From Paragordius varius (Eukaryota; Animalia; Nematomorpha), in NCBI GenBank assembly GCA_964247055.1, contig OZ176050.1, positions 9,548,001 through 9,612,000 on the forward strand: a stretch of 64,000 nt of DNA. The letters run 5' to 3'. The notes under the pieces are model-generated. The model was not told where the DNA came from, made no database searches, and saw only the letters and a list, made by a program, of their open reading frames with translations. The position numbers and the translations under genes are program-made. The number at the start of each line of letters is the position of its first letter. Positions within the stretch are counted from its first letter, which is position 1. Below are positions 1-51,652 of this stretch, piece after piece.

Positions 1-443
1 AAATACACATTAATATACAATTGAAATAGTTAGTTAAATATTTAATATAAAGCTCTGCAAAAATAAAGATGAGCTACAATAGTCCCTTACTTTTATCATT
101 ATTATCTAATAAATATACCTTTGCTACATAAATTTTTAATTACTTTTATATTATATTATTATAATTATTCTTTCTAAATCAACATAGTAATCTCTCAGCA
201 TATAAGTTCTTGTTTTCTTATAAACATATAAAACCTTATACCTGTATATATTTTATTGTTATATTTTTATTCCTAAATTTCATTATAAGAAAATATCATT
301 TAAGTAATAGATTTTCCAACCTAAGATATTGAATTATTTTCGGCGTATTCATTCTGGATCTATATTCCTTAACAAAATGTGATTTAAACCTTATGAATTA
401 AATTTAATAATTTTCATTATTCGATTCACTTGGCATTTAAAAC

Positions 444-500
444 ATGCATTTGTTAACACCTCGTGCAATTCTTTTATTAGTATTCTTACCCATAGTTGAG
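444..500 (+). other. uif exon 1 encoding the signal peptide
   Basis: ATG at 444 reads [19 protein letters not shown], then GTAAAA donor. It joins in phase 0 to [11 protein letters not shown] (2211) and WNSYQSTCY (6743), the start of the C-type lectin domain. Confidence 0.8.
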
Positions 501-2775
501 GTAAAAGAATTTATATATGATTTATATGATACATATATCAAAACATAAATACTACCAAAAAATGATATTATATTCTAAACTGTCCTCCTTTTCATCTGAG
601 CATCCGCCAAAACAAAATAAGATTCTTTTGTGTTAAAGTTTTTTCTAAACTTTTAATAATTGGGTGTAGCTGCCTCTCTGTCCCATGTCTATACACAATT
701 TTCGTTTATATTGCTCCATTAACTTGCCCACTCAATAAAATTGTTTAAGCGTGCCCATATTTAAGATTTTAACCCTTGATCAGAGTCCATAAATATCTCC
801 ATTTTTCAATGTCCTATATTTCGTTTATTCATTTGTAACTACTTCTAAACCCATCCCCTTTAGTCATAATGTTAAAATCTAAAACTCTCAAAAAATCCAA
901 AATGGTAGCGACCTAAATACCTATCTGAAATATATTACATATTCATATAATTCTCATAGTCGAAAGTGATTGCCTCAACATTTCTACCTATACAGTCGTT
1001 CTTAATAGTTTATTCTACATTTTAACCTTATCTAACACATTACTAACTTTAATTTTGCTTTTTATTATTTAAATTAGTATATGTCCCAAAAGACTCAATA
1101 TACATAAAGTTCCCTTAATATATCTAATAATCAATGATAAATTATTACGCGTTTATTTTTGTTTTAATCACAAATCCCTCTTTAAAAATAATTTTATTAG
1201 GTTTATAGGACATACATTTTACTTTTAAAAATCGAATTTTTTTACCAAATATTTTTTCCTATTCCTTAAAAAATTTAAGCTAAAATAGCCCGAGCTCAGT
1301 GTCTAAATTTTATCCCACAACGTTTATATAAGTTTTAAAGTTTCACCACTGTTGAACATTCGTTTTAGTATTCTAACCGTTTTTCTGAACTATTCAAGGA
1401 TAATTAAGTTTTTTTATCAAAACATTCCCCATTTCACATTTAACATATTACCCCTTTTCATTATTTTCTTGATGCATTAAGCCTTTGTATTTGGTATCCG
1501 TCTATTTATTGGAGACTAAAATCAAAATGCTTCCAATAGTTTGTTATACATTTAGGGTCATTTGTATGAGTCCTTGAGCATCCTCAAATTTGTTAATTTT
1601 ATATAATCATATCTTCCGGCTAAATTTTAAGTGCGATAAAAATGGTGATCTAAATTAAAGTATTTGTAATATTTCAAATTACTTGGTTTAATTTTATGCC
1701 GGCTCATTGTCCAAAAGGTCTTGGTATATCATTCATACGGACCATATTTTTTACACCAATTCAAATCAGAATCTTCCTCTCATATATATGTAAAAAATCA
1801 TACTTTGTAGATTTACAACATTTCTCTTTCGTTAATTTAATTGTTCTGCCTCTTATATCCCAAAAAATAATCGAATTTAATTCTTAAAGGCCCTTTATAT
1901 AATATACAATTGACGAAAATAGGAATCAACTTTTTTAAATAAATTTAGCCAAAACTTCCAATTTATAAAAACTAAATCCGAAAATGTATTTTTTAAACTG
2001 CTGATATGCATTGGATAACCATTCCAGAAATATTAATATCAATAAATATTTTGAATAAAAAAATGTCAGTGAAAATCAATATATAATTACATTTAAAATC
2101 CATGGAAAAATGTCTCATCAACAAACATAAATCAATTATTATTATAATAATAATTGATCTCAAAATTATCATAATTTTTATATTTTATATAATTTTTATT
2201 TTAATTATAGGCAATCACGGAAAAGTTTGAATGCCTAAAAGGTTAGTCAATTTTTTATTATATCATTACAACATTTTTTATTTATATAAATTTTTTATTT
2301 AGACATTCTCTTATTTTTTACCACATAATAGTGACTTTCTTCTTAAAATAATTTGATATAAAGGTGACATTTTATGCAAACGGTTAAATTTAAATTAACC
2401 ACGACCTTTTCTAACACTTTTCTCTTAGAAAATAATGTTATATATGTATTATTTATAATTGTATACTGAAATTTGACCTTTCACTCTCCTCTTGATTCCA
2501 TTTACAATTAATTTTTATTTAAATTTAATTTTATGAGATACAGGTAGAATGCAGGAAGTTTAATATATCCTCAATTATTTTTTTCTTGCAAATATTTTGG
2601 TCAGTGTTTTCATTCTTTTATAATAATAAATATATTTTGACATACTAAAAACGTAAAAATTTATATCGTTCTTGTTAAAAAAACAAAAAAAATGTTTTTT
2701 TTTTACCTTGTAATCGATGATACATTTTTGCATTTTTTTGAAATCATACTATAATAAAACAGAATAAATGATAAC

Positions 2776-2823
<48 letters not shown>

Positions 2824-4349
2824 ATATAGGTGAAGAAATAAATTTACGTTTTTTTACGCTTAAGGAATCGTTTTTCTTCTATTCGATCTGGATTTTTTGT
2901 TGCAACTACCTGTATATACAATTGTTTATTAATTTTTTTTATGTTAAATATTTATAAGACAAAAGTGCTGATTACTTAATTTATAGAATAAAAAAATTAA
3001 ATTTAATTAATTTTTAAGATAGAGAAGATACGATATTAACAGTTGATCTCCCATAAATGTTAGTAGAGTACTAGGTAATCTCTAATTAAATAATAAAACT
3101 GATTAAAATTCCTATTGCTGTAAATATTGAGTTTGCATAATTAAGATATGATATTGTCAAAGTTTAAACGTCGACTAACTGTAGCTAACTTTAAGTAACA
3201 ATTCTAAAACTAAAAATTAATATATAAAATAGGTTTTTATTTTTCCTAACAAAAAATTTGCTTATGACTGTTGCCTATCGAATGACCGATTCATTACTTA
3301 TTGGATAAAATAGTAATGTTTTGTCCATAAGTTATATAATATTAAAATTTAAATACCTCAGAATATGAAAAAACTCGTATTATGATAGATTTTTACATTA
3401 TGTACTTTTTTTTATTAATTAAACAGAAAAACGCTGTATAATGATAATATATTATCATATAAATCTTAATATATTATAAAACATGAATATAATTAACCTT
3501 TAATTGATTCCTTATTCTTCGCCTTAACGAAAATAAAATAAAAATCTCTGATAAACCATCAAAACATTTTAGCTTGCGCGAACATAGACACACAAATAAT
3601 GTCTGACATCTCTAAGTTACGCTCATTTTTTGGCTATTTATTTAAGTCAAATTGAATATTAATTTCTGACTACTTTCCCAGAATATTTACATTTAATATA
3701 CACACTGGACGAATCGGGGTTTTAAAAAGTCTGATAAAATATATATATTCTGATGAAAAAAATAGTATGGGAAATCATATGATACTTTTGGTTTTTGGTC
3801 TTCTTTCATGGTAGCTCCATATCAAAAAAAATCTCAAAATTTAGATCGCGTGATAACTATTTTTAACATATACCGGATTATGAGATCAATATAAGTTATT
3901 CAAAAGGTGCAAACTTTGCTTAAACAATAAAATTTGGCAAAATTTCGATGAAACGTATTTTATAGTATTTTTAAACATGATGAAAACTGTGTAAAATTAG
4001 TGTAAAATAACGCTTTATCTATCTAATTTGATAATGCTTAACATTTCTATCATTTCTAAATATTAGTCAAAAGATTAATTCGCCAATTTCTGTAAAATTA
4101 AAATTGTTTTTAAAAAAAGTTTAATTTTATATAAAAAATGTTTTGGCTTAAGTTATTTCATACTATAGTTGGGCAATTTGCAACACACTAGCGTATGGAA
4201 AAAGAAAGGAATAAATTGTTGACAATGACAATAACACGGGGTGCACCCCTTTTTACAATTGGTGAACCAATTGTCAGAGTACCGTGAGCTATATAAGTAT
4301 TTGAAAAACCTTTTAAAATTTTTCTAATAAAATATTTATGATTGCAAAT

Positions 4350-34700: not shown

Positions 34701-35689
34701 TTTCTTAATCATACTCCCTCACAATCTCAACAAATGTCTCATCATAATGGTTCTAATTTGTTGGAAGGAAGCAGTTTTGATACTTTACCCTATACATCAT
34801 CTATTTTAGACTCATCCAAATCCAAAGTGGCACACAATACTAATCAGTAATTAATGTTTTTTAATGAAATATTAACCAATTTTAAAAATTATTATTCAAC
34901 ATATATTAAACTGATTTCGTTGACATATTTATATAGGATTGGGAATGGTAATGTACCATATCATAATAATACAAACACAATCAATAACCCCAATAACCAT
35001 AATAGCAACACCAATAATGTTGGCCATCCAATAAATTATCATAATCAAAATCATAACAGCGTTCTAGATGGTTTTAACAATAATGAAAATATGTTTTCTA
35101 ACTCTATGACCAGCAGTAGTACACCATACTTTATCACATACCCTGCTTCCATGCGAGGCCCCAGTTTTTATGATTATGGAACAACGGTTAAACAGAACGC
35201 GGCACCTCACCCGCCAGCTCCTCCACCGCCACACCCCTTAACCCTTTTGAATGGCACACTGAATCGTCAAAATCTAAATAATATTCAAAATAAAAGCCAA
35301 TTATTAAACGGTAATGGTGTTATGCAGCAAAAACAGGGCAATGGTACACATCATAACATGACACTACATAAGAATGAAGATGATAACTTTTATGACATTT
35401 ATACGTATCAAAATCATGCCTATAATCCGACCCCGGGTAAGTTTTATGATACCCTGTCATTTATTTTATCCAAGTTTTCTTAATTTAAGATTTATTAATA
35501 TTTTTACAATATTAATATCAGATTTTTTGGTTAATACCTACTTTATTAATATCAATAACCTTTGCTGAACTCTTACCATATTTTATATTATCATTTCTTT
35601 TAGAAGAATTAAATGCTGAATTTTTGAATTCTTACCATGACAAAAGCAACGATGAAAGCAATAATGTTAAAGGTTATTCTTTTTTAAAT

Positions 35690-35725
<36 letters not shown>

Positions 35726-35778
35726 TTATTTTAAAAATTGATATAATTTTCATATTCAATTTAGATACTCGTGTTTAA
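444..35778 (+). CDS. uif: Uninflatable/SP1070-like giant type I transmembrane protein, 60 exons, about 4365 aa
   Basis: Exons, all GT-AG, phases consistent, total 13098 nt: 444-500,2211-2241,6743-6824,8708-8805,9847-10203,10479-10577,10661-10791,11237-11546,11764-11912,12381-12663,12771-12943,13030-13195,13525-13716,14427-14606,14711-14893,15225-15590,15669-15829,15899-16045,16119-16284,16373-16564,16641-16826,17001-17432,17648-17848,17968-18209,18270-18813,18978-19235,19480-19776,19894-20091,20196-20407,20481-20769,21589-21747,22282-22452,22566-22730,22871-23062,23485-23617,23703-23842,24079-24279,24435-24665,24906-25039,25358-25557,25686-25810,27315-27539,28758-28853,28949-29114,29271-29826,29965-30127,30375-30512,30677-31042,31108-31462,31523-32403,32494-32652,32870-33118,33209-33316,33389-33488,33880-34277,34369-34525,34682-34846,34937-35436,35604-35672,35765-35778. 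Domain order is CTLD-LDLa-CUBx3-sushi-EGF-FA58C-EGF-sushi-FA58C-HYRx2-ephrin-receptor-like Cys repeats-EGF array-LamG-HYR-Cys repeats-EGF-TM. This order and motifs such as [42 protein letters not shown] and GGIAG..IWMICV match Drosophila Uif as I recall it. Confidence 0.92.
600..1870 (-). mobile_element. Heavily decayed Ty3/Gypsy-like pol remnant in uif intron 1
   Basis: Minus-strand fragments broken by stops occur in RT-RNaseH-integrase order: IKLTKEKC (~1810), HFDFS..TD (~1510), DSDQG (~785), LNGAI* (~715). The motifs are short and degenerate. Confidence 0.35.
2778..2821. repeat. (TA)n microsatellite
   Basis: Pure TA run. Similar runs at 4353-4383, 13743-13771, 35693-35722, 51615-51650 and 55103-55132. 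Confidence 0.95.
6260..6401. mobile_element. Possible degenerate hAT-type MITE
   Basis: Imperfect termini CAGAGTATTCC ... GGAACCACCCTG with internal GGAACC/AACCGG motifs; no TSD seen. Confidence 0.3.
7486..7792. mobile_element. Foldback-type MITE, copy 1, with 21-bp subterminal tandem repeats
   Basis: TATACCATTT...AAATGGTATA termini, repeated AGGGTGAATTTGAATTGTTCA-like units inverted at the two ends, and a shared core TTTTCGGGCTAATATAA with the copy at 13791. Confidence 0.75.
9208..9372. mobile_element. Tc1/mariner-type MITE
   Basis: TA-CAGTCATGTATCCTTTATTTTATCAAAA... and ...TTTTGATAAAATAAAGGATATATGACTG-TA: roughly 60-bp inverted arms with TA on both flanks. Confidence 0.7.
13791..14123. 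mobile_element. Foldback-type MITE, copy 2
   Basis: Same termini, core and 21-bp units as 7486-7792, with a different number of units. Confidence 0.75.
23247..23438 (-). mobile_element. tRNA-derived SINE with target-site duplication
   Basis: Minus strand shows an A-box-like TGGCATAATAGG, a B-box GAGTTCGAACCC and an A-rich 3' tail. Flanked by AACAACCTACA(T/C)TATATA at 23229-23246 and 23439-23456. Confidence 0.7.
23960..24015. repeat. Perfect 56-bp spacerless palindrome
   Basis: TAGTTTTAACGTTATAGGGATTATATTA|TAATATAATCCCTATAACGTTAAAACTA; the second half is the exact reverse complement of the first. Confidence 0.95.
33389..33488 (+). other. uif transmembrane exon
   Basis: Encodes [27 protein letters not shown] directly after the last EGF exon. 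Confidence 0.9.
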
Positions 35779-36699
35779 TAGAATAAACTACTTAAGGATG
35801 ATGAACCTCGCTGTATTCAAATTACGCATTTATCCAAGGCATTTCCATTATTTACTTCTAAACACCATTTATGTATAAATAGAAAATAAATATTATTTAT
35901 TTTTAAATAACGTGGATTATATCACTTCGATAACACTAAGTTACAGTAGACAGCATTATACAAAATTGTAAAGTTTATTAAAAGAAGACTCCATGTGATA
36001 TTATTGATAACTGTATTTAATTTTTTTAATTTGGTTATTTATTAACTTGAATCACTTTATTAGCTTTTGGTGTAGTTTTCCATCCCGATAACCTACTATG
36101 ATATTGGGCATCTAAAAATATTCAGTCTATGATCTTTTAGGAGCCTTATACAAAAAATAGTTTTAATAAATGTAAAAAAATACTCATCTCAAACTTTCAG
36201 CCCCCATTTTTTTAATATTATTAACTAAAAATGGGCAAAGAAATAATAAAAAACATAAGCTTTTTGACTACAGAATTTTAATTTTTAATCTGGAATCATC
36301 TGTTAGTTTAAGTGGATTCTGATGTCTCGATTTTTATTTTAAATCTTCAATATTAAAAATAAAATAAATGGGTGATAATCATTTGTTAGTCAAAATGACT
36401 TAGTATTATTTTAAATTAGAAAATTAGGCGTGATTTTATATACCCCAGTTTTCTAAGTTACTTCTGCTAATGAAGTGTTAAAAATCTTGCATGTCTTCGT
36501 TTCCTCTTGGGATTTTCTTTTCCATATCAATTAAAATTTGGATATCTTCAAAATTTCAGGGCGATTTCGGCCCTTAGTTTTTTGCTAAACATTATTGCAA
36601 ATGTTTAGAACAGAAATAGTTCCGTATATTAGATATCACATACTGAAAATCTGCACATATACCCCATTATACAACAGAATCATTGGTCTAAAATAGAGG

Positions 36700-36963
36700 T
36701 AACATGCGGCCCTCCTAAATATTCCTGCCGCCTGCGTGAAATTTAAGCAAAATTAATTTTCTTACACAAATTCTTTGAATAAATTTTCCGAATTTCGACG
36801 CTCCAGCAGCAAAAATTGTTAAAAAAATAAGTAGTTTTTACAGTCTTATGTATTAAATCTAATAAAATATTTGTTAATGCCCATATATTTTTCGAATGCG
36901 GCCCGTTAAATTATTTGATCCGAAAATGCGTCACCCTTAGCCATTTATGTTGGAAACTCCCGG
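36700..36963. mobile_element. Truncated hAT-type MITE related to 57991-58242; mirrored at about 51016-51280
   Basis: Shares ACAYGCGGCCCTCC, GCAAAAATTGTTAAAA, GTCTTATGT and CGAATGCGGCCC blocks in the same order as the 57991 element. Confidence 0.65.
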
Positions 36964-37933
36964 TGTAAAATATAAATTTTTTGGTAATAAAACATCAAAA
37001 TAGATATAAAGATATATTGTTAGCAGCCACAGAGCCAGTGGATGGCTAACATTAGATGGGTCCAAACAATTAAATTACCTAAATAAAAATTATGCAGGTA
37101 TAACAAAATCAAACAATTATAGTGAATGGTGATCAAAGTTGAATTATAGTCGTCATAAACACACTGGATCACAGAAAATAAATTGATTCTTTAACCTTAA
37201 TGCCATAAATATTCAACTAAAGTAAGAATACTGTTAAGTTTAACTGAATAATTATTACAAATTATATGAATTTTATCCAAATTATTTTTAAACCTTAGTG
37301 GATAGCAATAAATTTTGAGAATCATTATTGAAGGCTGTTTTCAGATTAATTTATTAAATAATTCCAATTGATAAGCGATAAAAAGAACGATCTGTCTCCA
37401 TCTTTACAATTCATTTTCTATTCTGAAATTTAAGATTCCACAAGATTCTGTGGGTATATATAGGGGTAAACTATTAATAATTTACGCTACCCTGTTGATT
37501 TGACATTTAGCAAAATTTAAGCTGATCTGGCCATTAAAATTAACCAAAAAATATCACGTGGAGTCGTAATAGCCCTAATAATCACAATATGATAAATCTG
37601 GTTTTACATTCTGGGAACTAATATCACAATCGACCGGTATTTTGATACACACAAACATAAAAATAATCATAGTAAAACTCATTCTTTTTAAAATATTTCC
37701 CATAAACATATAAAAACTATTTTTATTATTTATTATATTTTTTATATATGTATTATGATATTCAATCATCAATCCTTAAACGAACCACAAATCGGAAGTG
37801 AAATTATCACTTTTTTGATTCTTTTTCTTTTTTTTAGGGTTTAAAGTATATTTTGATTCAATTGAAAGTTGAATTTGTCTCAAGGAGGAGGAATCCAGAT
37901 GTTGATTGAAAATGTCTTGGGTCCATTTACTTT

Positions 37934-40900
37934 TTAATATTTTATTATCATCTTTCTTCGAATCTGAATTAAAGTTTTCAATATCATGGTTTGAAATTTG
38001 TTTTTCTTGGATTCGCAAATCACAATCATCCTTAAGTTTGGCCTCATTGAAAATTTGGTTAGCGATGATATTGACTTCAACATACAGGGTTTTGCACTAG
38101 ACGAAGCTCTCGGCGATATTTTGTCAGGATTTTGCAAAGCACTATCAGCTTTCAGTTTGGCATCTTTTAAGATTTGGTTAGCGATGATATTGACATAATA
38201 CTCTAACATACAGGGTTTTGCACTTGACGAACTTCTCGCCGATACTTTGTCACGATTTCGCAAATCACTATCAACTTTCAGTTTGGCATCTTTTAAGATT
38301 TGGTTAGCGATGATATTGACATAATACTTCAACATACAGGGTTTTGCACTAGACGAAGCTCTCGGCGATATTTTGTCAGGATTTTGCAAATCACTATCAG
38401 CTTTCAGTTTGGCATCTTTTAAGATTTGGTTAGCGATGATATTGACATAATACTTCAACATACAGGGTTTTGCACTAGACGAAGCTCTCGGCGATATTTT
38501 GTCAGGATTTTGCAAATCACTATCAGCTTTCAGTTTGGCATCTTTTAAGATTTGGTTAGCGATGATATTGACATAATACTTCAACATACAGGGTTTTGCA
38601 CTAGACGAAGCTCTCGGCGATATTTTGTCAGGATTTTGCAAATCACTATCAGCTTTCAGTTTGGCATCTTTTAAGATTTGGTTAGCGATGATATTGACAT
38701 AATACTCTAACATACAGGGTTTTGCACTTGACGAACTTCTCGCCGATACTTTGTCACAATTTCGCAAATCACTATCAACTTTCAGTTTGGCATCTTTTAA
38801 GATTTGGTTAGCGATGATATTGACATAATACTTAGACATACAGGGTTTTGCACTAGACGAAGCTCTCGGCGATATTTTGTCAGGATTTTGCAAAGCACTA
38901 TCAGCTTTCAGTTTGGCATCTTTTAAGATTTGGTTAGCGATGATATTGACATAATACTCTAACATACAGGGTTTTGCACTTGACGAACTTCTCGCCGATA
39001 CTTTGTCACAATTTCGCAAATCACTATCAACTTTCAGTTTGGCATCTTTTAAGATTTGGTTAGCGATGATATTGACATAATACTTAGACATACAGGGTTT
39101 TGCACTTGACGAACTTCTCGCCGATACTTTGTCACGATTTCGCAAATCACTATCAACTTTCAGTTTGGCATCTTTTAAGATTTGGTTAGCGATGATATTG
39201 ACATAATACTTCAACATACAGGGTTTTGCACTAGACGAAGCTCTCGGCGATATTTTGTCAGGATTTTGCAAATCACTATCAGCTTTCAGTTTGGCATCTT
39301 TTAAGATTTGGTTAGCGATGATATTGACATAATACTTCAACATACAGGGTTTTGCACTTACCGAACTTCTCGCCGATACTTTGTCACTATTTCGCAAATC
39401 ACTATCAGCTTTCAGTTTGGCATCTTTTAAGATTTGGTTAGCGATGATATTAACATAATACTTCAACATACAGGGTTTTGCACTTACCGAACTTCTCGCC
39501 GATACTTTGTCACGATTTTGCAAATCATTATCAGCTTTCTGTTTGGCATCTTTTAAGATTTGGTTAGCGATGATATTGACATAATACTTCAACATACAGG
39601 GTTTTGCACTTACCGAACTTCTCGCCGATACTTTGTCACGATTTCGCAAATCACCATCAACTTTCAGTTTGGCATCTTTTAAGATTTGGTTAGCGATGAT
39701 ATTGACATAATACTTCAACATACAGGGATTTGGTCTAGACGAACTTCTCGCCGATACTTTGTCACGATTTCGCAAATCTCTATCAACTTTCAGTTTGGCA
39801 TCTTTTAAGATTTGGTTAGCGATGATATTGACATAATACTTCAACATACAGGGTTTTGCACTAGACGAAGCTCTCGGCGATATTTTGTCAGGATTTTGCA
39901 AATCACCATCAACTTTCAGTTTGGCATCTTTTAAGATTTGGTTAGCGATGATATTGACATAATACTTCAACATACAGGGATTTGGTCTAGACGAACTTCT
40001 CGCCGATACTTTGTCACGATTTCGCAAATCACTATCAACTTTCAGTTTGGCATCTTTTAAGATTTGGTTAGCGATGATATTGACATAATACTTCAACATA
40101 CAGGGTTTTGCACTAGACGAAGCTCTCGGCGATATTTTGTCAGGATTTTGCAAATCACTATCAGCTTTCAGTTTGGCATCTTTTAAGATTTGGTTAGCGA
40201 TGATATTGACATAATACTTCAACATACAGGGTTTTGCACTAGACGAAGCTCTCGGCGATATTTTGTCACGATTTTGCAAATCACTATCAGCTTTCAGTTT
40301 GGCATCTTTTAAGATTTGGTTAGCGATGATATTGACATAATACTTCAACATACAGGGTTTTGCACTTACCGAACTTCTCGCCGATACTTTGTCACGATTT
40401 CCCAAATCACTATCAGCTTTCAGTTTGGCATCTTTTAAGATTTGGTTAGCGATGATATTGACATAATACTTCAACATACAGGGATTTGGTCTAGACGAAC
40501 TTCTCGCCGATATATTGTCACGATTTCGCAAATCACTATCAACTTTCAGTTTGGCATCTTTTAAGATTTGGTTAGCGATGATATTGACATAATACTTCAA
40601 CATACAGTGTTTTGCACTTGACGAACTTCTCGCCGATATATTGTCACGATTTCGCAAATCACTATCAACTTTCAGTTTGGCATCTTTGAATATTTGGTTA
40701 GCGATGATATTGACATAATACTTCAACATACAGGGTTTTGCACTAGACGAACTTCTCGGCGATATTTTTTCACGATTTCGCAAATCACTATCAGCTTTTA
40801 GTTTGGCCTCCTTTAAAATTTGGTTAGCGTTGATATTAACACAAGTTTTCGGCTTCCGTGGCTTTAGAAAATATCCATTAGGAATTGGTAGAAAATAGTT

Positions 40901-40981
40901 TTCTGCAATATTTGTGTTTGCTTTAAACTTTTGGATTGAATCGTTTTTGTTAGAAAACGTAGTGAAAGTATTAATAAACAT
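37934..40981 (-). CDS. Hypothetical 1015-aa protein of 42-aa tandem repeats (81-aa head including a partial unit, 21 full units, 52-aa tail); coding status unproven
   Basis: ORF track. Unit KPCMLKYYVNIIANQILKDAKLKADSDLQNPDKISPRASSSA; DNA period 126 bp (e.g. 38161 vs 38287); 81+21x42+52=1015. Confidence 0.5.
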   Translation of the reverse strand: MFINTFTTFSNKNDSIQKFKANTNIAENYFLPIPNGYFLKPRKPKTCVNINANQILKEAKLKADSDLRNREKISPRSSSSAKPCMLKYYVNIIANQIFKDAKLKVDSDLRNRDNISARSSSSAKHCMLKYYVNIIANQILKDAKLKVDSDLRNRDNISARSSSRPNPCMLKYYVNIIANQILKDAKLKADSDLGNRDKVSARSSVSAKPCMLKYYVNIIANQILKDAKLKADSDLQNRDKISPRASSSAKPCMLKYYVNIIANQILKDAKLKADSDLQNPDKISPRASSSAKPCMLKYYVNIIANQILKDAKLKVDSDLRNRDKVSARSSSRPNPCMLKYYVNIIANQILKDAKLKVDGDLQNPDKISPRASSSAKPCMLKYYVNIIANQILKDAKLKVDRDLRNRDKVSARSSSRPNPCMLKYYVNIIANQILKDAKLKVDGDLRNRDKVSARSSVSAKPCMLKYYVNIIANQILKDAKQKADNDLQNRDKVSARSSVSAKPCMLKYYVNIIANQILKDAKLKADSDLRNSDKVSARSSVSAKPCMLKYYVNIIANQILKDAKLKADSDLQNPDKISPRASSSAKPCMLKYYVNIIANQILKDAKLKVDSDLRNRDKVSARSSSSAKPCMSKYYVNIIANQILKDAKLKVDSDLRNCDKVSARSSSSAKPCMLEYYVNIIANQILKDAKLKADSALQNPDKISPRASSSAKPCMSKYYVNIIANQILKDAKLKVDSDLRNCDKVSARSSSSAKPCMLEYYVNIIANQILKDAKLKADSDLQNPDKISPRASSSAKPCMLKYYVNIIANQILKDAKLKADSDLQNPDKISPRASSSAKPCMLKYYVNIIANQILKDAKLKADSDLQNPDKISPRASSSAKPCMLKYYVNIIANQILKDAKLKVDSDLRNRDKVSARSSSSAKPCMLEYYVNIIANQILKDAKLKADSALQNPDKISPRASSSAKPCMLKSISSLTKFSMRPNLRMIVICESKKNKFQTMILKTLIQIRRKMIIKY
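38010..40840 (-). repeat. 126-bp minisatellite array, about 22 units
   Basis: Recurring CATCTTTTAAGATTTGGTTAGCGATGATATTGACATAATACT every 126 bp. Confidence 0.98.
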
Positions 40982-42141
40982 TTTTATTTATAATGTGTTT
41001 TGTGAATTTTTAGATTATTGTCAATAATTTACGATTGTTGTATAATAATAAGGTTTAATAATATGCTAACAATCAAAATCAATTTTAGTTAGAGTAGCAT
41101 TAACACTACATATAATATTATTTAATCAATTGACTTTAAAATATATTAAAAAATTGTTTTAATTTTACCTAGTACGCTTTAATGAAATACAGTGGAGTAT
41201 GGCTTAACAAAAGTTTGTACATGCAGTAAAAATTGAAATTATAGGACAAAATGCAATATAAAAATAAATTATATCTAAGGCAATCATACTTTTTAAACCC
41301 TTAATTTTTCTCATAAAAGCTATTTAGTTACATACAGAATTGATTGTGTTATTAATATATTTCTCTCTTTCAAAATTTGCCATTCAAAACATTTTTTGTT
41401 TTTTACCATACGCTTATGTGAATAGAATCATTGGCATTTTTTGCCTAATATGAAAGTTTTATAAAATTTATACGCTACTTCCAACTTGGTATTGTATTGT
41501 ATGTAGCTAAAGTCGTCGATTTATAAGTTTTTCATAGGTGATTTAAGCAAGGGTTATAAGATTTTTTAATAAAAAGTTTGTATTCTTAGTTTTCTCTCCA
41601 GCGCGTTTCGCGCTTTATTTTTCGTTAATTGTCATTTAATATTCCGATTTTTGTGCTTTAACAGTGTGTCCAGAATACGATTAGAGCCATTGGGGGTTTT
41701 ATTTTTTCGAGAACTGATTTTTTGTCTCTCCATATTAGTTTTGATAAAAACGCTTGTCGCTTTTTTATGGTCCAGTTTCTAGCCCCTAATAACATTGCCG
41801 GGAAGATTAGAAAATTTTGAGTCCTAATTTTTGCTGATAGTTTAATATCATATTATAAAACTTCCTTTTTTAGCGATATGTTGTCAGATTTGTTTTGCCT
41901 AACGTAATTCGTCTGATATTTGTCGTGCTATTATTGTTATTGTTAATAAGACTTGACGGATGTATATATTTGGAAAGTGCATTTATTATTTGATTTCCAA
42001 TGAATGTTGAAAAATATTGTATGGGCAAATTGCAAATTATCAAAAAATTTCAGTGAGATCATTTTTATACCCAATTTGATAAATTTTATTTATAGATTAA
42101 ATATATGTAGTAAATGAAAATTAAAACTTTTACCCCATATG

Positions 42142-43110
42142 TAAGGTGACCAGATTTTTTGAAGGAAAAAGCGGGACAAATCCGAGAAGGGTGGGTTATT
42201 GGGGGATACAACCAAAAATTTTTATACAAAAAATTTATTGTAATATTTATTTATTTTTAACACAAAAACATTATAAATATAAAAAAATTTGTACCTTACA
42301 GGTTGTTTGTACCTTATTCAAAAAATTTACATGTGCACGAACAAAGGGTGAAGTGATTGTAATATTATAGGAAAAAATAATAAATACGAAATCATCAAAA
42401 AGTGCGCTGGGTGATGCAAAAAGCGGCACAAAAAATATTTTTAACAATTTAGCGAGTAATCTTAATCAAAGCAATTATTAGCAGATACACAAAGCTATTC
42501 AAACAGCTACTAATTTGTTACCCCTGGAGTGGAAAATATAGTATCTTAAAATGCATTGATATTGAAGAACTGTTGGTTAGCTCTTTTGCCAGCGATTGAA
42601 ATATTTATAAAAATGTGATCTCCCAGAATCCTATTTTTTATCACAGGAAAGGTCAAAAGTCAAAAAAAGGTTAGAAAATAATTTTATACCATTACCTAAT
42701 TGCAATATAATAAAGCATCCAGAAAAACAAGGCTCATTGAATAGCCAGAATATAAAAATGTTTTAAAACAAAAACGATTATTTGGAAGACAAGACGCAAT
42801 GACACTTTTTTATGAAGTCTCAATATGATAAATATATTGAATGAAAACTTATATTATGGACGACAGAAAAAAATACGTAGGATAGAAATGGTTAAAATAA
42901 TCATTTTTAAACAAACTATGTTACATACAATAATATTTTAATTGTAGTTGCAATATCTTTACCTGAACCACTGCTATTGAACGCGTTTTTCCACAGTAAA
43001 TCAAGTTTGGACACGGAAAAATCAAATATAAATGTTGAAACTTTAAAAGCCATTTTATCTATAAATATAATTTGGCAAATTATTATGAAGACTTATACAA
43101 TATTTTAAGT
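42142..43110 (+). mobile_element. Deleted, diverged hAT derivative (terminal region plus transposase patches); mirrored at 45755-46723
   Basis: Begins TAAGGTGACCAGA. Blocks at about 42320, 42495, 42570, 42670, 42780 and 42955-43107 match transposase positions 44230, 44650, 44810, 45065, 45185 and 45490-45650 in order, with many mismatches and large deletions. Confidence 0.8.
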
Positions 43111-43375
43111 ATTTTTATTTTTTAACACAAAATCTTTATAAATATAAGAAAATATTTTATTCTTTGGTATATTTTTTGTTTGAGTGAATGCGTTTTAGCA
43201 GATTGTCATCATTTTTTAAAATATTGTAGAAGTTTTCACAAGAATTTGTCAAATTATATTTGACAGATAAAACGGCCTTTAAAGTTTCAACATTTAAATT
43301 TGATTTTTCCGATCACACCTGATTTACTTTGGAAAAACGCGCTCAGTAGCAGCGTTGGTTCCAGGTAAAGATAGT

Positions 43376-46300
43376 TAAGGTGACCAGACGTGCCGTTTTT
43401 GGCGGGACAGTCCCGCTTTTTCCTACTTTGTCCCGCGTTCTGCTACGTTTTTAAAATGTCCCGCTTTTTCACGATTATATAAAAAAATTTTTTTTTATAC
43501 AAATAAATTTTTTTTATCCGTTTAAATATCATTAAATATCTTTAATATCTATATAATTTTAAATTAAAATTTTTTATTTTTAAATTATTATTTATTTTTT
43601 TCGAATTTATATTATATGATTATACACTTTCCTTCCTACTACTACTGTGATCATTATCAAAAAGCCAAGTTAATTCCACAAATCTCTAGATTAAAAGACA
43701 AATTGATACCACAAATCGGTACCTTACACGTTTATTCCAGAAAATTAATGTAATATAATATTTATTATACTAATATATTAGTTTTATTACTTGTCAACAT
43801 AATTAAACTTTACACGTTTATTTCAGAAAACAAAGGTAATATAACATTTATTATACTAATTGTAGTTTATGAATATGAGCACAAAAAGAGGTTATAAATT
43901 CAACGATGAATTAATGAAAGATTTTCCTTTTATCAAAAAAGAATGAATCATCTGTTAAATGTCTTATATGCGAGGGGAAATTTACCCTAGGACATGGCGG
44001 CAAGCATGATATTACAAAGCATATGGAAACACAGAAACATGATCAAATGTTTAGATATGGCTGCATCATCTTACAAAATGAGCGATTTTTTTCGAAAAAC
44101 CGCTTTTGGAGAGGAAAAAAAGAATTTAGCACTAGATGAAGGCGTGTTATCTTTTCACGCCGTTAATCACAACCATTCCTTTAGATCTATGGACTGTACC
44201 TCACAGGTTATTCGCACGTTATTCCATAAAAATTTACATGTGCCCGTACAAAGGCTGAAGCCATTGTGTGCTTTGTCCTTTCGTCACATGCATTTTCTGA
44301 AATACAAAAAGATTTGCTGAAAATTAATTTCTTATCCCTATACTCTGATGCATCAAATCACCATGAAACAAAATTATTTCTAACCTTAAAGATATTTTTA
44401 TTCTGAAACCGGAGTAAAAATTAAAAATTTAGATTCAATTTCTCTACCCGGCAAAAATTCCGAAATAATATTAACTTCAATAATGCATATTCTAGAAAAA
44501 AATAATTTAAAAGACAAAATTATCGCATATTGCGCTGACAACACCAATACGAACTTCGGTGGAAAAGCAAGGAGGGGAGCGAATAATATTCATAAATTAG
44601 CATATACATTATTGGCGTTGGGTGTGCAGCGCATATTATGCACAACGATATTCAAACAGCTGCTGATTTGTTACCCCTAGATGTGGAAAATGTAGTTGTT
44701 AAAATATATTCCTATTTTTATATATACACGGTACGTGTTGAAACGCTTAAAGAATTCTGTGAAAATGCAGAAGTTCAATATCAAAAAATGCTTGGATATT
44801 GTAAAGCTCGTTGGTTAGCTTTTATGCCAGCTATCGAAAAAATTTTTAAAATGTATGATCCTTTAAAATCTTTTTTTTCACAGGATAAATGTCCTACAAC
44901 TTTAAAAAGTTTTTTGAAAGCGATTCTTCAAAAATATGGTTAGAATTCTTACATAATCTAGCTTCTCTCTTTCATAATGTTATTAAATTTATAGAAGGTC
45001 ACAAAGTTTCGGCAATCGAAGTAGCCAATGAAGTTAGTAACCTAAAATTCCAATGTCAAGAACGGTTAGAAAATAATTTTATACCATTAACCATCCGCAA
45101 TATAATAAATAATTTAGAAAAACAAGGGTTAATAAATTGCCAAGATATCCTGTACCAAATAAAAATGATAAAAACTGTAAAGATTATTTTGAAGACTGGA
45201 CGACGCAAATTAATGAAATTGATTATTTTCATTGGATAACATTAAATACAGAATTTAATTGGTGCGATGTTCAAAAATCATTTGATTATATCTGTTCCCA
45301 AAAATTCTCTAAAAATCTTTCAGAAAAAAATGATCTTTTTTCTAAAGTATCATTAGTTAAAAGATATATTAATAATGAAAAACTTAAATTAAGGACAACA
45401 GAAAAAAATACAGTAGAAAAGAGGTTATAAATATTTCATTATTTTGAAACAAATTATGTTCCATACAATTTGAAAAATGTGGAATTTGTACTATCTTTAC
45501 CTGGAACCAACGCTGCTACTGAGCGCGTTTTTCCAAAGTAAATCAGGTGTGATCGGAAAAATCAAATTTAAATGTTGAAACTTTAAAGGCCGTTTTATCT
45601 GTCAAATATAATTTGACAAATTCTTGTGAAAACTTCTACAATATTTTAAAGAATGATGACAATCTGCTAAAACGCATTCACTCAAACAAAAAATATACCA
45701 AAGAATAAAATATTTTCTTATATTTATAAAGATTTTGTGTTAAAAAATAAAAATACTTAAAATATTGTATAAGTCTTCATAATAATTTGCCAAATTATAT
45801 TTATAGATAAAATGGCTTTTAAAGTTTCAACATTTATATTTGATTTTTCCGTGTCCAAACTTGATTTACTGTGGAAAAACGCGTTCAATAGCAGTGGTTC
45901 AGGTAAAGATATTGCAACTACAATTAAAATATTATTGTATGTAACATAGTTTGTTTAAAAATGATTATTTTAACCATTTCTATCCTACGTATTTTTTTCT
46001 GTCGTCCATAATATAAGTTTTCATTCAATATATTTATCATATTGAGACTTCATAAAAAAGTGTCATTGCGTCTTGTCTTCCAAATAATCGTTTTTGTTTT
46101 AAAACATTTTTATATTCTGGCTATTCAATGAGCCTTGTTTTTCTGGATGCTTTATTATATTGCAATTAGGTAATGGTATAAAATTATTTTCTGACCTTTT
46201 TTTGACTTTTGACCTTTCCTGTGATAAAAAATAGGATTCTGGGAGATCACATTTTTATAAATATTTCAATCGCTGGCAAAAGAGCTAACCAACAGTTCTT

Positions 46301-46723
46301 CAATATCAATGCATTTTAAGATACTATATTTTCCACTCCAGGGGTAACAAATTAGTAGCTGTTTGAATAGCTTTATGTATCTGCTAATAATTGCTTTGAT
46401 TAAGATTACTCGCTAAATTGTTAAAAATATTTTTTGTACCGCTTTTTGCATCACCCAGCGCACTTTTTGATGATTTCGTATTTATTATTTTTTCCTATAA
46501 TATTACAATCACTTCACCCTTTGTTCGTGCACATGTAAATTTTTTGAATAAGGTACAAACAACCTGTAAGGTACAAATTTTTTTATATTTATAATGTTTT
46601 TGTGTTAAAAATAAATAAATATTACAATAAATTTTTTGTATAAAAATTTTTGGTTGTATCCCCCAATAACCCACCCTTCTCGGATTTGTCCCGCTTTTTC
46701 CTTCAAAAAATCTGGTCACCTTA
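43376..46723 (+). mobile_element. hAT-Blackjack-like DNA transposon, 3.35 kb, rearranged
   Basis: TIRs TAAGGTGACCAGA...TCTGGTCACCTTA with subterminal GGGACA/GTCCCG motifs, like the TAGGGTGACCA ends of MER81/MER94/Blackjack as I recall them. Contains a hAT transposase. No matching 8-bp TSD: AAGATAGT on the left vs CATATGGG on the right. Confidence 0.85.
43875..45708 (+). pseudogene. Frameshifted hAT transposase
   Basis: Across several frames: BED-like finger CLICEGKFTLGHGGKHDITKHMETQKH, YSDASNH, YCADNTNTNFGG, GCAAHIMHN (CxxH), ARWL, and the C-terminal LSLPGTNAATERVFS...LNVETLKAVL. Multiple frameshifts and stops. Confidence 0.88.
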
Positions 46724-47883
46724 CATATGGGGTAAAAGTTTTAATTTTCATTTACTACATATATTTAATCTATAAATAAAATTTATCAAATTGGGTATAA
46801 AAATGATCTCACTGAAATTTTTTGATAATTTGCAATTTGCCCATACAATATTTTTCAACATTCATTGGAAATCAAATAATAAATGCACTTTCCAAATATA
46901 TACATCCGTCAAGTCTTATTAACAATAACAATAATAGCACGACAAATATCAGACGAATTACGTTAGGCAAAACAAATCTGACAACATATCGCTAAAAAAG
47001 GAAGTTTTATAATATGATATTAAACTATCAGCAAAAATTAGGACTCAAAATTTTCTAATCTTCCCGGCAATGTTATTAGGGGCTAGAAACTGGACCATAA
47101 AAAAGCGACAAGCGTTTTTATCAAAACTAATATGGAGAGACAAAAAATCAGTTCTCGAAAAAATAAAACCCCCAATGGCTCTAATCGTATTCTGGACACA
47201 CTGTTAAAGCACAAAAATCGGAATATTAAATGACAATTAACGAAAAATAAAGCGCGAAACGCGCTGGAGAGAAAACTAAGAATACAAACTTTTTATTAAA
47301 AAATCTTATAACCCTTGCTTAAATCACCTATGAAAAACTTATAAATCTACGACTTTAGCTACATACAATACAATACCAAGTTGGAAGTAGCGTATAAATT
47401 TTATAAAACTTTCATATTAGGCAAAAAATGCCAATGATTCTATTCACATAAGCGTATGGTAAAAAACAAAAAATGTTTTGAATGGCAAATTTTGAAAGAG
47501 AGAAATATATTAATAACACAATCAATTCTGTATGTAACTAAATAGCTTTTATGAGAAAAATTAAGGGTTTAAAAAGTATGATTGCCTTAGATATAATTTA
47601 TTTTTATATTGCATTTTGTCCTATAATTTCAATTTTTACTGCATGTACAAACTTTTGTTAAGCCATACTCCACTGTATTTCATTAAAGCGTACTAGGTAA
47701 AATTAAAACAATTTTTTAATATATTTTAAAGTCAATTGATTAAATAATATTATATGTAGTGTTAATGCTACTCTAACTAAAATTGATTTTGATTGTTAGC
47801 ATATTATTAAACCTTATTATTATACAACAATCGTAAATTATTGACAATAATCTAAAAATTCACAAAACACATTATAAATAAAA

Positions 47884-50045
47884 ATGTTTATTAATACTTT
47901 CACTACGTTTTCTAACAAAAACGATTCAATCCAAAAGTTTAAAGCAAACACAAATATTGCAGAAAACTATTTTCTACCAATTCCTAATGGATATTTTCTA
48001 AAGCCACGGAAGCCGAAAACTTGTGTTAATATCAACGCTAACCAAATTTTAAAGGAGGCCAAACTAAAAGCTGATAGTGATTTGCGAAATCGTGAAAAAA
48101 TATCGCCGAGAAGTTCGTCTAGTGCAAAACCCTGTATGTTGAAGTATTATGTCAATATCATCGCTAACCAAATATTCAAAGATGCCAAACTGAAAGTTGA
48201 TAGTGATTTGCGAAATCGTGACAATATATCGGCGAGAAGTTCGTCAAGTGCAAAACCCTGTATGTTGAAGTATTATGTCAATATCATCGCTAACCAAATC
48301 TTAAAAGATGCCAAACTGAAAGTTGATAGTGATTTGCGAAATCGTGACAATATATCGGCGAGAAGTTCGTCTAGACCAAATCCCTGTATGTTGAAGTATT
48401 ATGTCAATATCATCGCTAACCAAATCTTAAAAGATGCCAAACTGAAAGCTGATAGTGATTTGGGAAATCGTGACAAAGTATCGGCGAGAAGTTCGGTAAG
48501 TGCAAAACCCTGTATGTTGAAGTATTATGTCAATATCATCGCTAACCAAATCTTAAAAGATGCCAAACTGAAAGTTGTTGGTGATTTGCGAAATCGTGAC
48601 AAAGTATCGGCGAGAAGTTCGGTAAGTGCAAAACCCTGTATGTTGAAGTATTATGTCAATATCATCGCTAACCAAATCTTAAAAGATGCCAAACTGAAAG
48701 TTGATGGTGATTTGCAAAATCGTGACAAAATATCGCCGAGAGCTTCGTCTAGTGCGAAACCCTGTATGTTGAAGTATTATGTCAATATCATCGCTAACCA
48801 AATCTTAAAAGATGCCAAACTGAAAGCTGATAGTGATTTGCAAAATCGTGACAAAGTATCGGCGAGAAGTTCGGTAAGTGCAAAACCCTGTATGTTGAAG
48901 TATTATGTCAATATCATCGCTAACCAAATCTTAAAAGATGCCAAACTGAAAGCTGATAGTGATTTGCAAAATCCTGACAAAATATCGCCGAGAGCTTCGT
49001 CTAGTGCAAAACCCTGTATGTTGAAGTATTATGTCAATATCATCGCTAACCAAATCTTAAAAGATGCCAAACTGAAAGTTGATAGTGATTTGCGAAATTG
49101 TGACAAAGTATCGGCGAGAAGTTCGTCAAGTGCAAAACCCTGTATGTTAGAGTATTATGTCAATATCATCGCTAACCAAATCTTAAAAGATGCCAAACTG
49201 AAAGCTGATAGTGATTTGCAAAATCCTGACAAAATATCGCCGAGAGCTTCGTCTAGTGCAAAAACCTGTATGTTGAAGTATTATGTCAATATCATCGCTA
49301 ACCAAATCTTAAAAGATGCCAAACTGAAAGCTGATAGTGATTTGCAAAATCCTGACAAAATATCGCCGAGAACTTCGTCTAGTGCAAAACCCTGTATGTT
49401 GAAGTATTATGTCAATATCATCGCTAACCAAATCTTAAAAGATGCCAAACTGAAAGCTGATAGTGATTTGCAAAATCCTGACAAAATATCGCCGAGAGCT
49501 TCGTCTAGTGCAAAACCCTGTATGTTGAAGTATTATGTCAATATCATCGCTAACCAAATCTTAAAAGATGCCAAACTGAAAGTTGATAGTGATTTGCGAA
49601 ATCGTGACAAAGTATCGGCGAGAAGTTCGTCAAGTGCAAAACCCTGTATGTTAGAGTATTATGTCAATATCATCGCTAACCAAATCTTAAAAGATGCCAA
49701 ACTGAAAGCTGATAGTGCTTTGCAAAATCCTGACAAATATCGCCGAGAGCTTCGTCTAGTGCAAAACCCTGTATGAAGTATTATGTCAATATCATCGCTA
49801 ACCAAATCTTAAAAGATGCCAAACTGAAAGCTGATAGTGATTTGCAAAATCCTGCCAAAATATCGCCGAGAGCTTCGTCTAGTGCAAAACCCTGTATGTT
49901 GAAGTCAATATCATCGCTAACCAAATTTTCAATGAATCCAAACTTAAGGATGATTGTGATTTGCGAATCCAAGAAAAACAAATTTCAAACCATGATATTG
50001 AAAACTTTAATTCAGATTCGAAGAAAGATGATAATAAAATATTAA
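47884..50045 (+). pseudogene. Second copy of the 42-aa repeat ORF, 14 full units, frameshifted in unit 13
   Basis: ORFs 47884-49776 and 49773-50045. A 1-nt loss near 49737 (GACAAATATC) and a 3-nt loss at ATGAAG (49773) relative to the other units. Confidence 0.6.
48025..49965 (+). repeat. 126-bp minisatellite array, about 15 units
   Basis: Mirror of 38010-40840 with a different order of internal units. Confidence 0.97.
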
Positions 50046-51387
50046 AAAGTAAATGGACCCAAGACATTTTCAATCAACATCTGGATTCCTCCTCCTTGAG
50101 ACAAATTCAACTTTCAATTGAATCAAAATATACTTTAAACCCTAAAAAAAAGAAAAAGAATCAAAAAAGTGATAATTTCACTTCCGATTTGTGGTTCGTT
50201 TAAGGATTGATGATTGAATATCATAATACATATATAAAAAATATAATAAATAATAAAAATAGTTTTTATATGTTTATGGGAAATATTTTAAAAAGAATGA
50301 GTTTTACTATGATTATTTTTATGTTTGTGTGTATCAAAATACCGGTCGATTGTGATATTAGTTCCCAGAATGTAAAACCAGATTTATCATATTGTGATTA
50401 TTAGGGCTATTACGACTCCACGTGATATTTTTTGGTTAATTTTAATGGCCAGATCAGCTTAAATTTTGCTAAATGTCAAATCAACAGGGTAGCGTAAATT
50501 ATTAATAGTTTACCCCTATATATACCCACAGAATCTTGTGGAATCTTAAATTTCAGAATAGAAAATGAATTGTAAAGATGGAGACAGATCGTTCTTTTTA
50601 TCGCTTATCAATTGGAATTATTTAATAAATTAATCTGAAAACAGCCTTCAATAATGATTCTCAAAATTTATTGCTATCCACTAAGGTTTAAAAATAATTT
50701 GGATAAAATTCATATAATTTGTAATAATTATTCAGTTAAACTTAACAGTATTCTTACTTTAGTTGAATATTTATGGCATTAAGGTTAAAGAATCAATTTA
50801 TTTTCTGTGATCCAGTGTGTTTATGACGACTATAATTCAACTTTGATCACCATTCACTATAATTGTTTGATTTTGTTATACCTGCATAATTTTTATTTAG
50901 GTAATTTAATTGTTTGGACCCATCTAATGTTAGCCATCCACTGGCTCTGTGGCTGCTAACAATATATCTTTATATCTATTTTGATGTTTTATTACCAAAA
51001 AATTTATATTTTACACCGGGAGTTTCCAACATAAATGGCTAAGGGTGACGCATTTTCGGATCAAATAATTTAACGGGCCGCATTCGAAAAATATATGGGC
51101 ATTAACAAATATTTTATTAGATTTAATACATAAGACTGTAAAAACTACTTATTTTTTTAACAATTTTTGCTGCTGGAGCGTCGAAATTCGGAAAATTTAT
51201 TCAAAGAATTTGTGTAAGAAAATTAATTTTGCTTAAATTTCACGCAGGCGGCAGGAATATTTAGGAGGGCCGCATGTTACTGCTGTTTTAGACCAATGAT
51301 TCTGTTGTATAATGGGGTATATGTGCAGATTTTCAGTATGTGATATTAAATATACGGAACTATTTGTGTTCTAAACATTTGCAATAT

Positions 51388-51611
51388 TGTACTGTAACTT
51401 AGTATCGAAGTGATATAATCTACATTATCTAAAGATAAATAATATTTATTTTCTATTTATACATAAATGGTGTTTTGAAGTAAATAATGGAAATGCCTTG
51501 GATAAATGCATAATTTGAATACAGCGAGGTTTATCATCCTTAAGTAGTTTATTCTATTAAACACGAGTATCTAAATTGAATAAATAAATATTATATCATT
51601 TTTTAAAATAA

Positions 51612-51614
<3 letters not shown>
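51388..51614 (-). pseudogene. Antisense duplicate of the uif last-intron end, terminal exon (51557-51570) and proximal 3' UTR
   Basis: TTAAACACGAGTATCTAAATTGAAT is the reverse complement of 35754-35778. The adjoining roughly 170 bp match 35779-35948 with about ten differences. Confidence 0.92.

Positions 51615-51652
<38 letters not shown>

Follow-up and report, generated by a model that had tools for sequence, protein, structure and literature searches.

A 16-kb palindrome with a hAT transposon terminus at its inner junction in the nematomorph Paragordius varius

The palindrome and its central hAT element

The DNA analysed here, called the window below, is a stretch of 64 000 bp from the nematomorph Paragordius varius (GenBank assembly GCA_964247055.1, contig OZ176050.1, forward strand). 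It covers 9.55-9.61 Mb of a 15.2-Mb contig, in an assembly of 110.6 Mb and 44 contigs, and its N count is 0. A 16-kb palindrome with a spacer, at 9.59 Mb, occupies the intergenic DNA between a uif-like gene on one side and an ACSBG-like gene on the other. The element at its centre is a full-length transposon of the hAT superfamily (T), and the inner junction of the structure (J1) lies exactly on the 5' terminal base of T. Positions are those of the window unless they are given as positions of T.

The mirror-image structure was detected both by an inverted-repeat search and by BLAST of the window against itself, and its boundaries were refined with pairwise BLAST. A first-pass annotation had described arms of about 7.7 and 6.2 kb around a 2114-bp spacer and had proposed a self-comparison as a check; the window self-BLAST shows the inverted repeat with these dimensions (Table 1). 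From the centre outwards, each arm contains the transposase 3' end, an inverted, deleted and diverged transposase copy, the 3' terminal inverted repeat (TIR) of T, 1160 bp of flank, an open reading frame (ORF) made of 42-amino-acid (aa) repeats, an element resembling a miniature inverted-repeat transposable element (MITE) and ~260 bp near the uif-like gene. The annotation had this order of parts right, but the gene copy of the right arm is frameshifted (630 aa against 1015 aa on the left). A genome search found the arms at no other place; the outer flanks of the palindrome are single-copy and unrelated to each other.

Near-full-length copies of T were collected from the genome with positions 43200-47000 as the query. 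At least 40 were obtained, 86-90% identical, all of them starting at the base that corresponds to 43376 and ending at 46723-46728; copy L002 is collinear with T over positions 1-3353. The common start identifies 43376 as the terminal base of T. T begins and ends with a 13-bp TIR, TAAGGTGACCAGA; its TAAGG fits YARNG, the consensus with which hAT terminal inverted repeats start. About 23 copies of the family are flanked by matching 8-mers (0-1 mismatch) with the consensus nnYATRnn, and the AT at target-site positions 4-5 is invariant in 45/45 readings of the target-site duplication (TSD). The hAT C-terminal dimerisation domain (PF05699) was detected in three other copies at 28.1, 31.7 and 27.9 bits (cutoff 21.4). 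The transposase of T itself is split over at least five frames, although the …LSLPGTNAATERVF… (…ATERVF…) motif is still readable at 45491-45538. In the Pfam scan, PF05699 stayed below significance in the broken transposase pieces of the window, and the central pieces gave no match to the RNase-H-like DDE core. A central piece of 206 aa clusters with the hAT-derived DUF4371/FAM200-ZBED5 RNase-like proteins in a language-model feature search (score 0.97, 213 shared features), which is a lead and not an alignment. With the TIR, the 8-bp TSDs and PF05699, the assignment of T to the hAT superfamily, as made in the first pass, is sound on sequence criteria.

The 3' part of T contains an inverted, internally deleted copy of the transposase. 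Its best block (45757-46067) matches 45329-45649 at 80%; in coordinates of the element, positions 1954-2274 match 2692-2382 in reverse at ~80%, and more collinear inverted blocks extend across 45757-46630. The same internal reverse match is present in every other copy of the family and is not specific to the palindrome locus; the founder of the family thus already held the inverted copy in its 3' part. The diverged, deleted transposase had been seen correctly in the first pass, but it is common to the whole family and is no product of a local event. The founder appears to have been itself the product of an inverted self-duplication. Every family copy (L002-L012 and L029-L047, T included) carries the inverted copy in its 3' ~970 bp, so that a full-length transcript would end in an imperfect hairpin of ~310 bp. 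Some hAT copies are regularly spaced, at 15-20 kb on contig C2 (11203542-11258333) and at 36 kb on C8 (71032-110433), with near-identical match patterns, which suggests tandem segmental duplications holding the element.

Junctions and arm divergence

At J1, the terminal base of T is joined to a site inside its own coding sequence, T position 2115 falling within the codons of the dimerisation domain (…LSLPGTNAATERVF…). The join is blunt, with a microhomology of 0: continuation of the arm would read …GATAGT-ACAAATTCC, and the actual sequence is …GATAGT-TAAGGTGACC. As is known from Hermes and Ac biochemistry, cleavage by hAT enzymes leaves the element with a 3'-OH end and the flank with a hairpin, and a blunt join at the exact terminal base is what an end cleaved by a transposase would give.

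The 8-mer of the 3' flank of T, CATATGGG, represents the surviving copy of its target site. It was found neither beside the 5' end of T nor at either outer flank, and its absence from the 5' end indicates that the original 5' flank was lost. The 8-mer beside J1 is AAGATAGT, which carries the AT core (positions 4-5) invariant among the target sites of the family. The outer ends of both arms consist of (AT)n, in a window of which (AT)8 or longer runs make up 0.3%. The hAT family of T inserts at nnYATRnn and often within (TA)n tracts (e.g. L002 and L003), which resemble the sequence that bounds the palindrome.

An error of replication or repair without any transposase could have produced such a structure, by template switching (fork stalling and template switching or microhomology-mediated break-induced replication, FoSTeS/MMBIR, or a process like origin-dependent inverted-repeat amplification, ODIRA) or by fold-back repair between (AT)n and some other site. 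The coincidence with the terminus of T would then be due to chance or to secondary structure. A self-complementary (AT)n at the outer boundary is typical of template switching, the T copy was already old and broken, and an intact transposase was not found in the genome sample (150 scored matches). Template switches, however, usually occur with microhomology, of which J1 has none, and an exact match to the terminal base is expected by chance at about 1 in several thousand positions. Fold-back priming at the internal inverted repeat of T is ruled out, since it would have centred the palindrome on the 107-bp loop at 45650-45756 and not on the 5' end of T. We regard an origin without transposase as unlikely.

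The second process examined was alternative transposition of the maize Ac type (sister-chromatid or reversed-ends), in which one 5' and one 3' terminus, belonging to sister chromatids or to elements close to each other, are inserted jointly. A hAT element stands at the heart of the structure, with a terminus at the inner junction, and sister-chromatid transposition in maize, with or without re-replication, gives inverted duplications that contain inverted parts of Ac (bioRxiv 10.1101/2020.01.07.897926). The 64-kb window was searched for further termini of T with up to 2 mismatches, and apart from a chance-level match at 30261 none was found beyond three TIR matches. Only one of these three sits at a new junction, and both 3' termini retain the same original flank, CATATGGG. 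No 8-bp target duplication brackets the structure: the 8-mers at J1, at both outer ends and at the 3' flank of T all differ. Each single-element scheme worked out on paper requires a further junction at a terminus or else a pair of TSDs; neither is present here. Transposition with two ends is therefore held to be quite improbable, a step below a transposase-free error. The locus had been proposed in the first pass as an animal example of Ac-type transposition. An inverted duplication including host DNA and a hAT terminus at J1 are indeed present, but there is one terminus only, no 8-bp duplication, and an outer end in (AT)n.

The two arms were compared by pairwise BLAST. Positions 40805-43375 and 48060-45490 differ at 5 of 2571 bp, with no gap (99.8% identity); all 5 mismatches fall in the inner 2534 bp. 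Positions 36589-38019 and 51390-49960 are 99.5% identical (7 mismatches in 1431 bp). All 7 of these mismatches lie within the first 110 bp of 36589-38011, and the following 1313 bp are identical. Identity is just 93.6% in the outermost ~265 bp (35687-35948 against 51651-51390). The outer 375 bp are thus ~6% diverged against 0.1-0.2% further in (Fisher p = 3e-8). The unequal size of the arms is accounted for by the 126-bp array (22.5 units on the left and 15.5 on the right) and by 640 bp found on the left only, at 35949-36588. At the array ends the units are collinear and nearly identical (L1-4 = R1-4; L18-22 = R10-14), and whole units were gained or lost in the middle. In total the arms differ by 12 substitutions outside the arrays, the 640-bp indel, 7 array units and one frameshift. 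The 640-bp segment includes an old repeat whose identity to other loci is 75-81%, and neither a TIR nor a TSD was found at it. A young insertion is unlikely, given this low identity of the repeated core and the lack of TIR and TSD; the segment is more likely ancestral and lost from the right arm by deletion.

Long-read data are known to fail at palindromes, and runs labelled with the same species contain just 0.27-0.60 of the sampled words. An assembly artefact was considered, either as a chimeric or fold-back join or as two haplotypes stitched in opposite orientation. Fold-back chimeras have identical arms and no spacer; the structure described here has a unique 2.1-kb centre, uneven divergence, a 640-bp indel and unequal arrays. 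Haplotype copies would have both flanks in common, and the outer flanks here are unrelated and single-copy. The locus lies deep in its 15.2-Mb contig, the window is free of N, and a false join exactly on the terminal base of a transposon is improbable. An artefact thus seems very unlikely to us, slightly more so than the two-ended transposition. Five further runs (X5-X9), from as many studies and under the labels of five other organisms, contain ~0.2 of the 31-mers sampled from 41400-47400 in each case. This share could reflect related species, shared transposon copies or carry-over.

Table 1. Features of the palindrome locus (window coordinates)
Feature	Position	Strand	Size and remarks
Left arm of the inverted duplication	35693-43375		7683 bp
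Right arm of the inverted duplication	45490-51650		6161 bp
Unique centre	43376-45489	+	First 2114 bp of the hAT element; 5' TIR and transposase gene in at least 5 broken frames
Full-length hAT element T	43376-46723	+	3348 bp; centre and first 1234 bp of the right arm
Inverted copy of T positions 2115-3348	42142-43375	-	99.7% identical to 45490-46723; abuts the 5' terminal base of T
Inner junction J1	43375/43376		5' terminal base of T joined to the complement of T position 2115
3' TIR of T	46711-46723 (right); 42142-42154 (left)		Left copy mirrored
Target-site copy of T, surviving (CATATGGG)	46724-46731	+	3' flank 8-mer; mirrored at 42134-42141
Inverted, internally deleted transposase copy inside T	45757-46630	-	76-88% identical; left-arm mirror at ~42235-43108
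Left 42-aa-repeat ORF	37934-40981	-	1015 aa, 22 units; 126-bp array at 38012-40841
Right 42-aa-repeat ORF	47884-49776	+	630 aa open, frameshift in unit 14; array at 48024-49964
MITE-like short interspersed repeat	36701-36982 (left); 50997-51278 (right)		~1000 first-look genome candidates
Diverged outer zone, left arm	35687-36698		265 bp at 93.6%, 640-bp segment and 110 bp with 7 mismatches; right partner 51281-51651
(AT)15, left outer end	35693-35722		
(AT)18, right outer end	51615-51650		

Origin of the inverted duplication

From the position and bluntness of J1, the palindrome is, with a probability that we put somewhat above even, the scar of a transposase cut at the 5' end of T that was mis-repaired, followed by gene conversion. 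In the sequence of events proposed, transposase would have cut the old element T at the 5' terminus and not at the other. The 5' end thus released would have been joined, inverted, to position 2115 of T, either in the same molecule or in the sister chromatid, by one-ended strand transfer or by end-joining. A strand transfer into the opposite strand 2.1 kb inside T would keep the element continuous on one side and create an intermediate with a loop and a stem. Outward copying of this intermediate would then give an inverted repeat of the last 1234 bp of T and of 4.9 kb of flanking host DNA. The structure would have been closed by a second junction, not made by transposase, at the hairpin-prone, self-complementary (AT)n, with loss of the original 5' flank of T. 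Gene conversion between the arms would later have maintained their near-identity, save in the outer ~375 bp beyond the 640-bp indel, and unequal exchange would have changed the sizes of the 126-bp arrays. The anatomy of the locus, the hAT identity, the blunt junction at the exact terminus and the (AT)n boundary are seen in the sequence; transposase cleavage, the mode of joining, gene conversion and timing are inferred.

Four other routes were considered and ruled out. Insertion of T into an older fragment of T was rejected by the different 8-mers at its two ends, AAGATAGT and CATATGGG. Replication of a hairpin on the flank left by hAT excision predicts a spacer-free palindrome of flank only, in which the 3' part of T would be missing. 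A landing of T in an existing palindrome with subsequent conversion is contradicted by the absence of the 5' flank of T and of its 5' target-site copy. A mobile element of the foldback type, with long TIRs, was dismissed on account of the lack of an outer TSD and of the presence of the arms at one locus only.

For the timing, trees were built from 32 copies of the hAT family, with the 3' part and the 5' part of T treated separately. In the tree of the 3' part, the pair of copies in the window has a stem of 4.9% and terminal branches of 0.4% and 0%. In the tree of the 5' part, the terminal branch of T reaches 6.1% against 0-4.1% for the other copies, which makes T the oldest copy sampled. If the 6% of the outer zone (~3% per arm) is the true age of the duplication, the event could fall in the period of insertion of the family, which may still have been active at that time. 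A value of ~3% per arm lies inside the range of terminal branch lengths of the other copies, taken as 0.3-4.1% for this comparison, and the involvement of a transposase is thus coherent. At this age, everything inward of ~36698/51281 would have to have been homogenised afterwards, by conversion between the arms or by a single long repair tract. The identity gradient fits just as well a scenario in which an older, short inverted repeat recently primed such a long tract.

Several points weigh against a mis-repaired transposase cut with later conversion. If the 0.2% divergence of the arms is their true age, the cut would have been made long after the ~5% decay of T and would need a recent transposase acting in trans; among the 150 scored family matches, no transposase frame longer than 395 aa was found. 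The outer junction has no transposase signature. The 8-mer AAGATAGT agrees with the target sites in their invariant core only, which has a chance probability of ~0.1. The identity gradient that suggests arm-to-arm gene conversion comes from one genome. The palindrome is described here from the assembled sequence, and three exact-protein look-ups for independent contigs gave no match.

Host sequences in the arms and related systems

The gene upstream of the palindrome, on the + strand, encodes HYR, laminin-G, ephrin-receptor-like and EGF domains, a combination that fits a uif/SVEP1-like protein. The last long ORF of the gene ends at 35483, and the ~260-bp outer part of the arm begins 210 bp downstream. 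The arms can thus contain at most a putative 3' untranslated region of this gene. The uif 3' end that the first pass had placed in the arms is narrowed accordingly: ~260 bp downstream of the last long ORF of the uif-like gene are present in both, of which a 3' untranslated region is the most that can be expected.

The 42-aa-repeat ORF has at least 7 other family members, paralogues of 400-500 aa that each consist of a single ORF (L055-L061, e.g. C1:13386436, C3:8436460 and C2:5292876). The paralogues share their N-terminus, similar repeats (…Y(T/V)NIIANQI(I/L)K(E/D)A…) and a conserved C-terminal part (…KKVRWIDEI…). The Pfam scan of the repeat protein and of two paralogues gave nothing significant, and the family is lineage-specific. 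The repeats resemble amphipathic helices of the RI-anchoring type (RIAD/AKAP-like), and the C-terminal KKVRW motif of the paralogues is reminiscent of a PP1-docking RVxF/W site. A host repeat gene was duplicated, as the first-pass annotation had it in speaking of paired gene copies; but the right copy is frameshifted and both copies lack the conserved C-terminal part. With this part absent from both, their long open frame may reflect recent homogenisation of the units rather than selection. A third fragment of the repeat gene lies ~27 kb to the right of the window (C1:9638665-9639087, L062), with 60-74% identity and stop codons.

The closest comparison is with the products of maize Ac/Ds. These include the 'Ac killer' alleles p1-ww-id1/id4, which have two termini and perfect 8-bp TSDs around a composite insertion (bioRxiv 10.1101/2020.01.07.897926). 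The palindrome has in common with the maize products the hAT superfamily, the inverted duplication of part of an element together with flanking host DNA, and a terminus at the rearrangement junction; with the killer alleles it shares the potential for a transposon hairpin RNA. It differs from them by its single terminus, by the lack of a TSD pair and by a second junction at (AT)n. It is also natural, old and found in an animal, with arms of 6-7.7 kb, compared with 0.3-3.2 Mb for the maize products.

Mu killer (Muk) of maize, as described in the same paper, likewise arose naturally, as a piece of a DNA transposon duplicated in inverted orientation beside host DNA; it differs in belonging to the Mutator superfamily and in having a demonstrated silencing activity. 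In Drosophila, hybrid element insertion of P elements reportedly uses aberrant ends after replication, often inserts into or next to an element and gives flanking duplications and deletions. The aberrant use of transposon ends is the common feature. That process has two ends, makes 8-bp TSDs and belongs to the P superfamily, whereas the palindrome lacks a second terminus. The palindromes of primate sex chromosomes, which are said to be kept alike by arm-to-arm gene conversion, also have long inverted arms, a unique spacer, very high arm identity and more diverged edges. The present palindrome is much smaller and is a single case, and conversion is suggested here by the identity gradient, not by comparison between species.

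Most likely, then, the palindrome is no new kind of system but a natural scar of a process known from maize, departing from the two-ended Ac model in two of its defining features. One end of T appears to have been used, the second junction being at (AT)n. Transposon-made inverted duplications are well documented in laboratory stocks of maize, rice and Drosophila; to our knowledge, clean natural scars of this kind have rarely been described in wild animal genomes. In the present case, the preserved junction at the exact terminus allows the initiating cut to be inferred, and the identity gradient suggests arm-to-arm conversion on a kilobase scale.

The event duplicated a member of the repeat-protein family and put 1.2 kb of transposase sequence in a hairpin configuration. 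In the predicted hairpin, 1234 bp of T are paired in inverted orientation at 99.7% around a 2.1-kb loop, with the 1.2 kb of transposase sequence in each stem. The palindrome is most likely a neutral scar, and an effect through hairpin RNA is speculation. A functional locus can be imagined, in which the hairpin, produced by one-ended hAT strand transfer and kept by conversion, would be transcribed by read-through from the uif-like gene into small RNAs that help to shut down the hAT family, as an animal counterpart of Mu killer and Ac killer; we consider this highly doubtful, even more so than an assembly artefact. If the structure is real, it provides a useful example of how palindromes, gene duplicates and perhaps triggers of silencing may arise from DNA transposons in animals.

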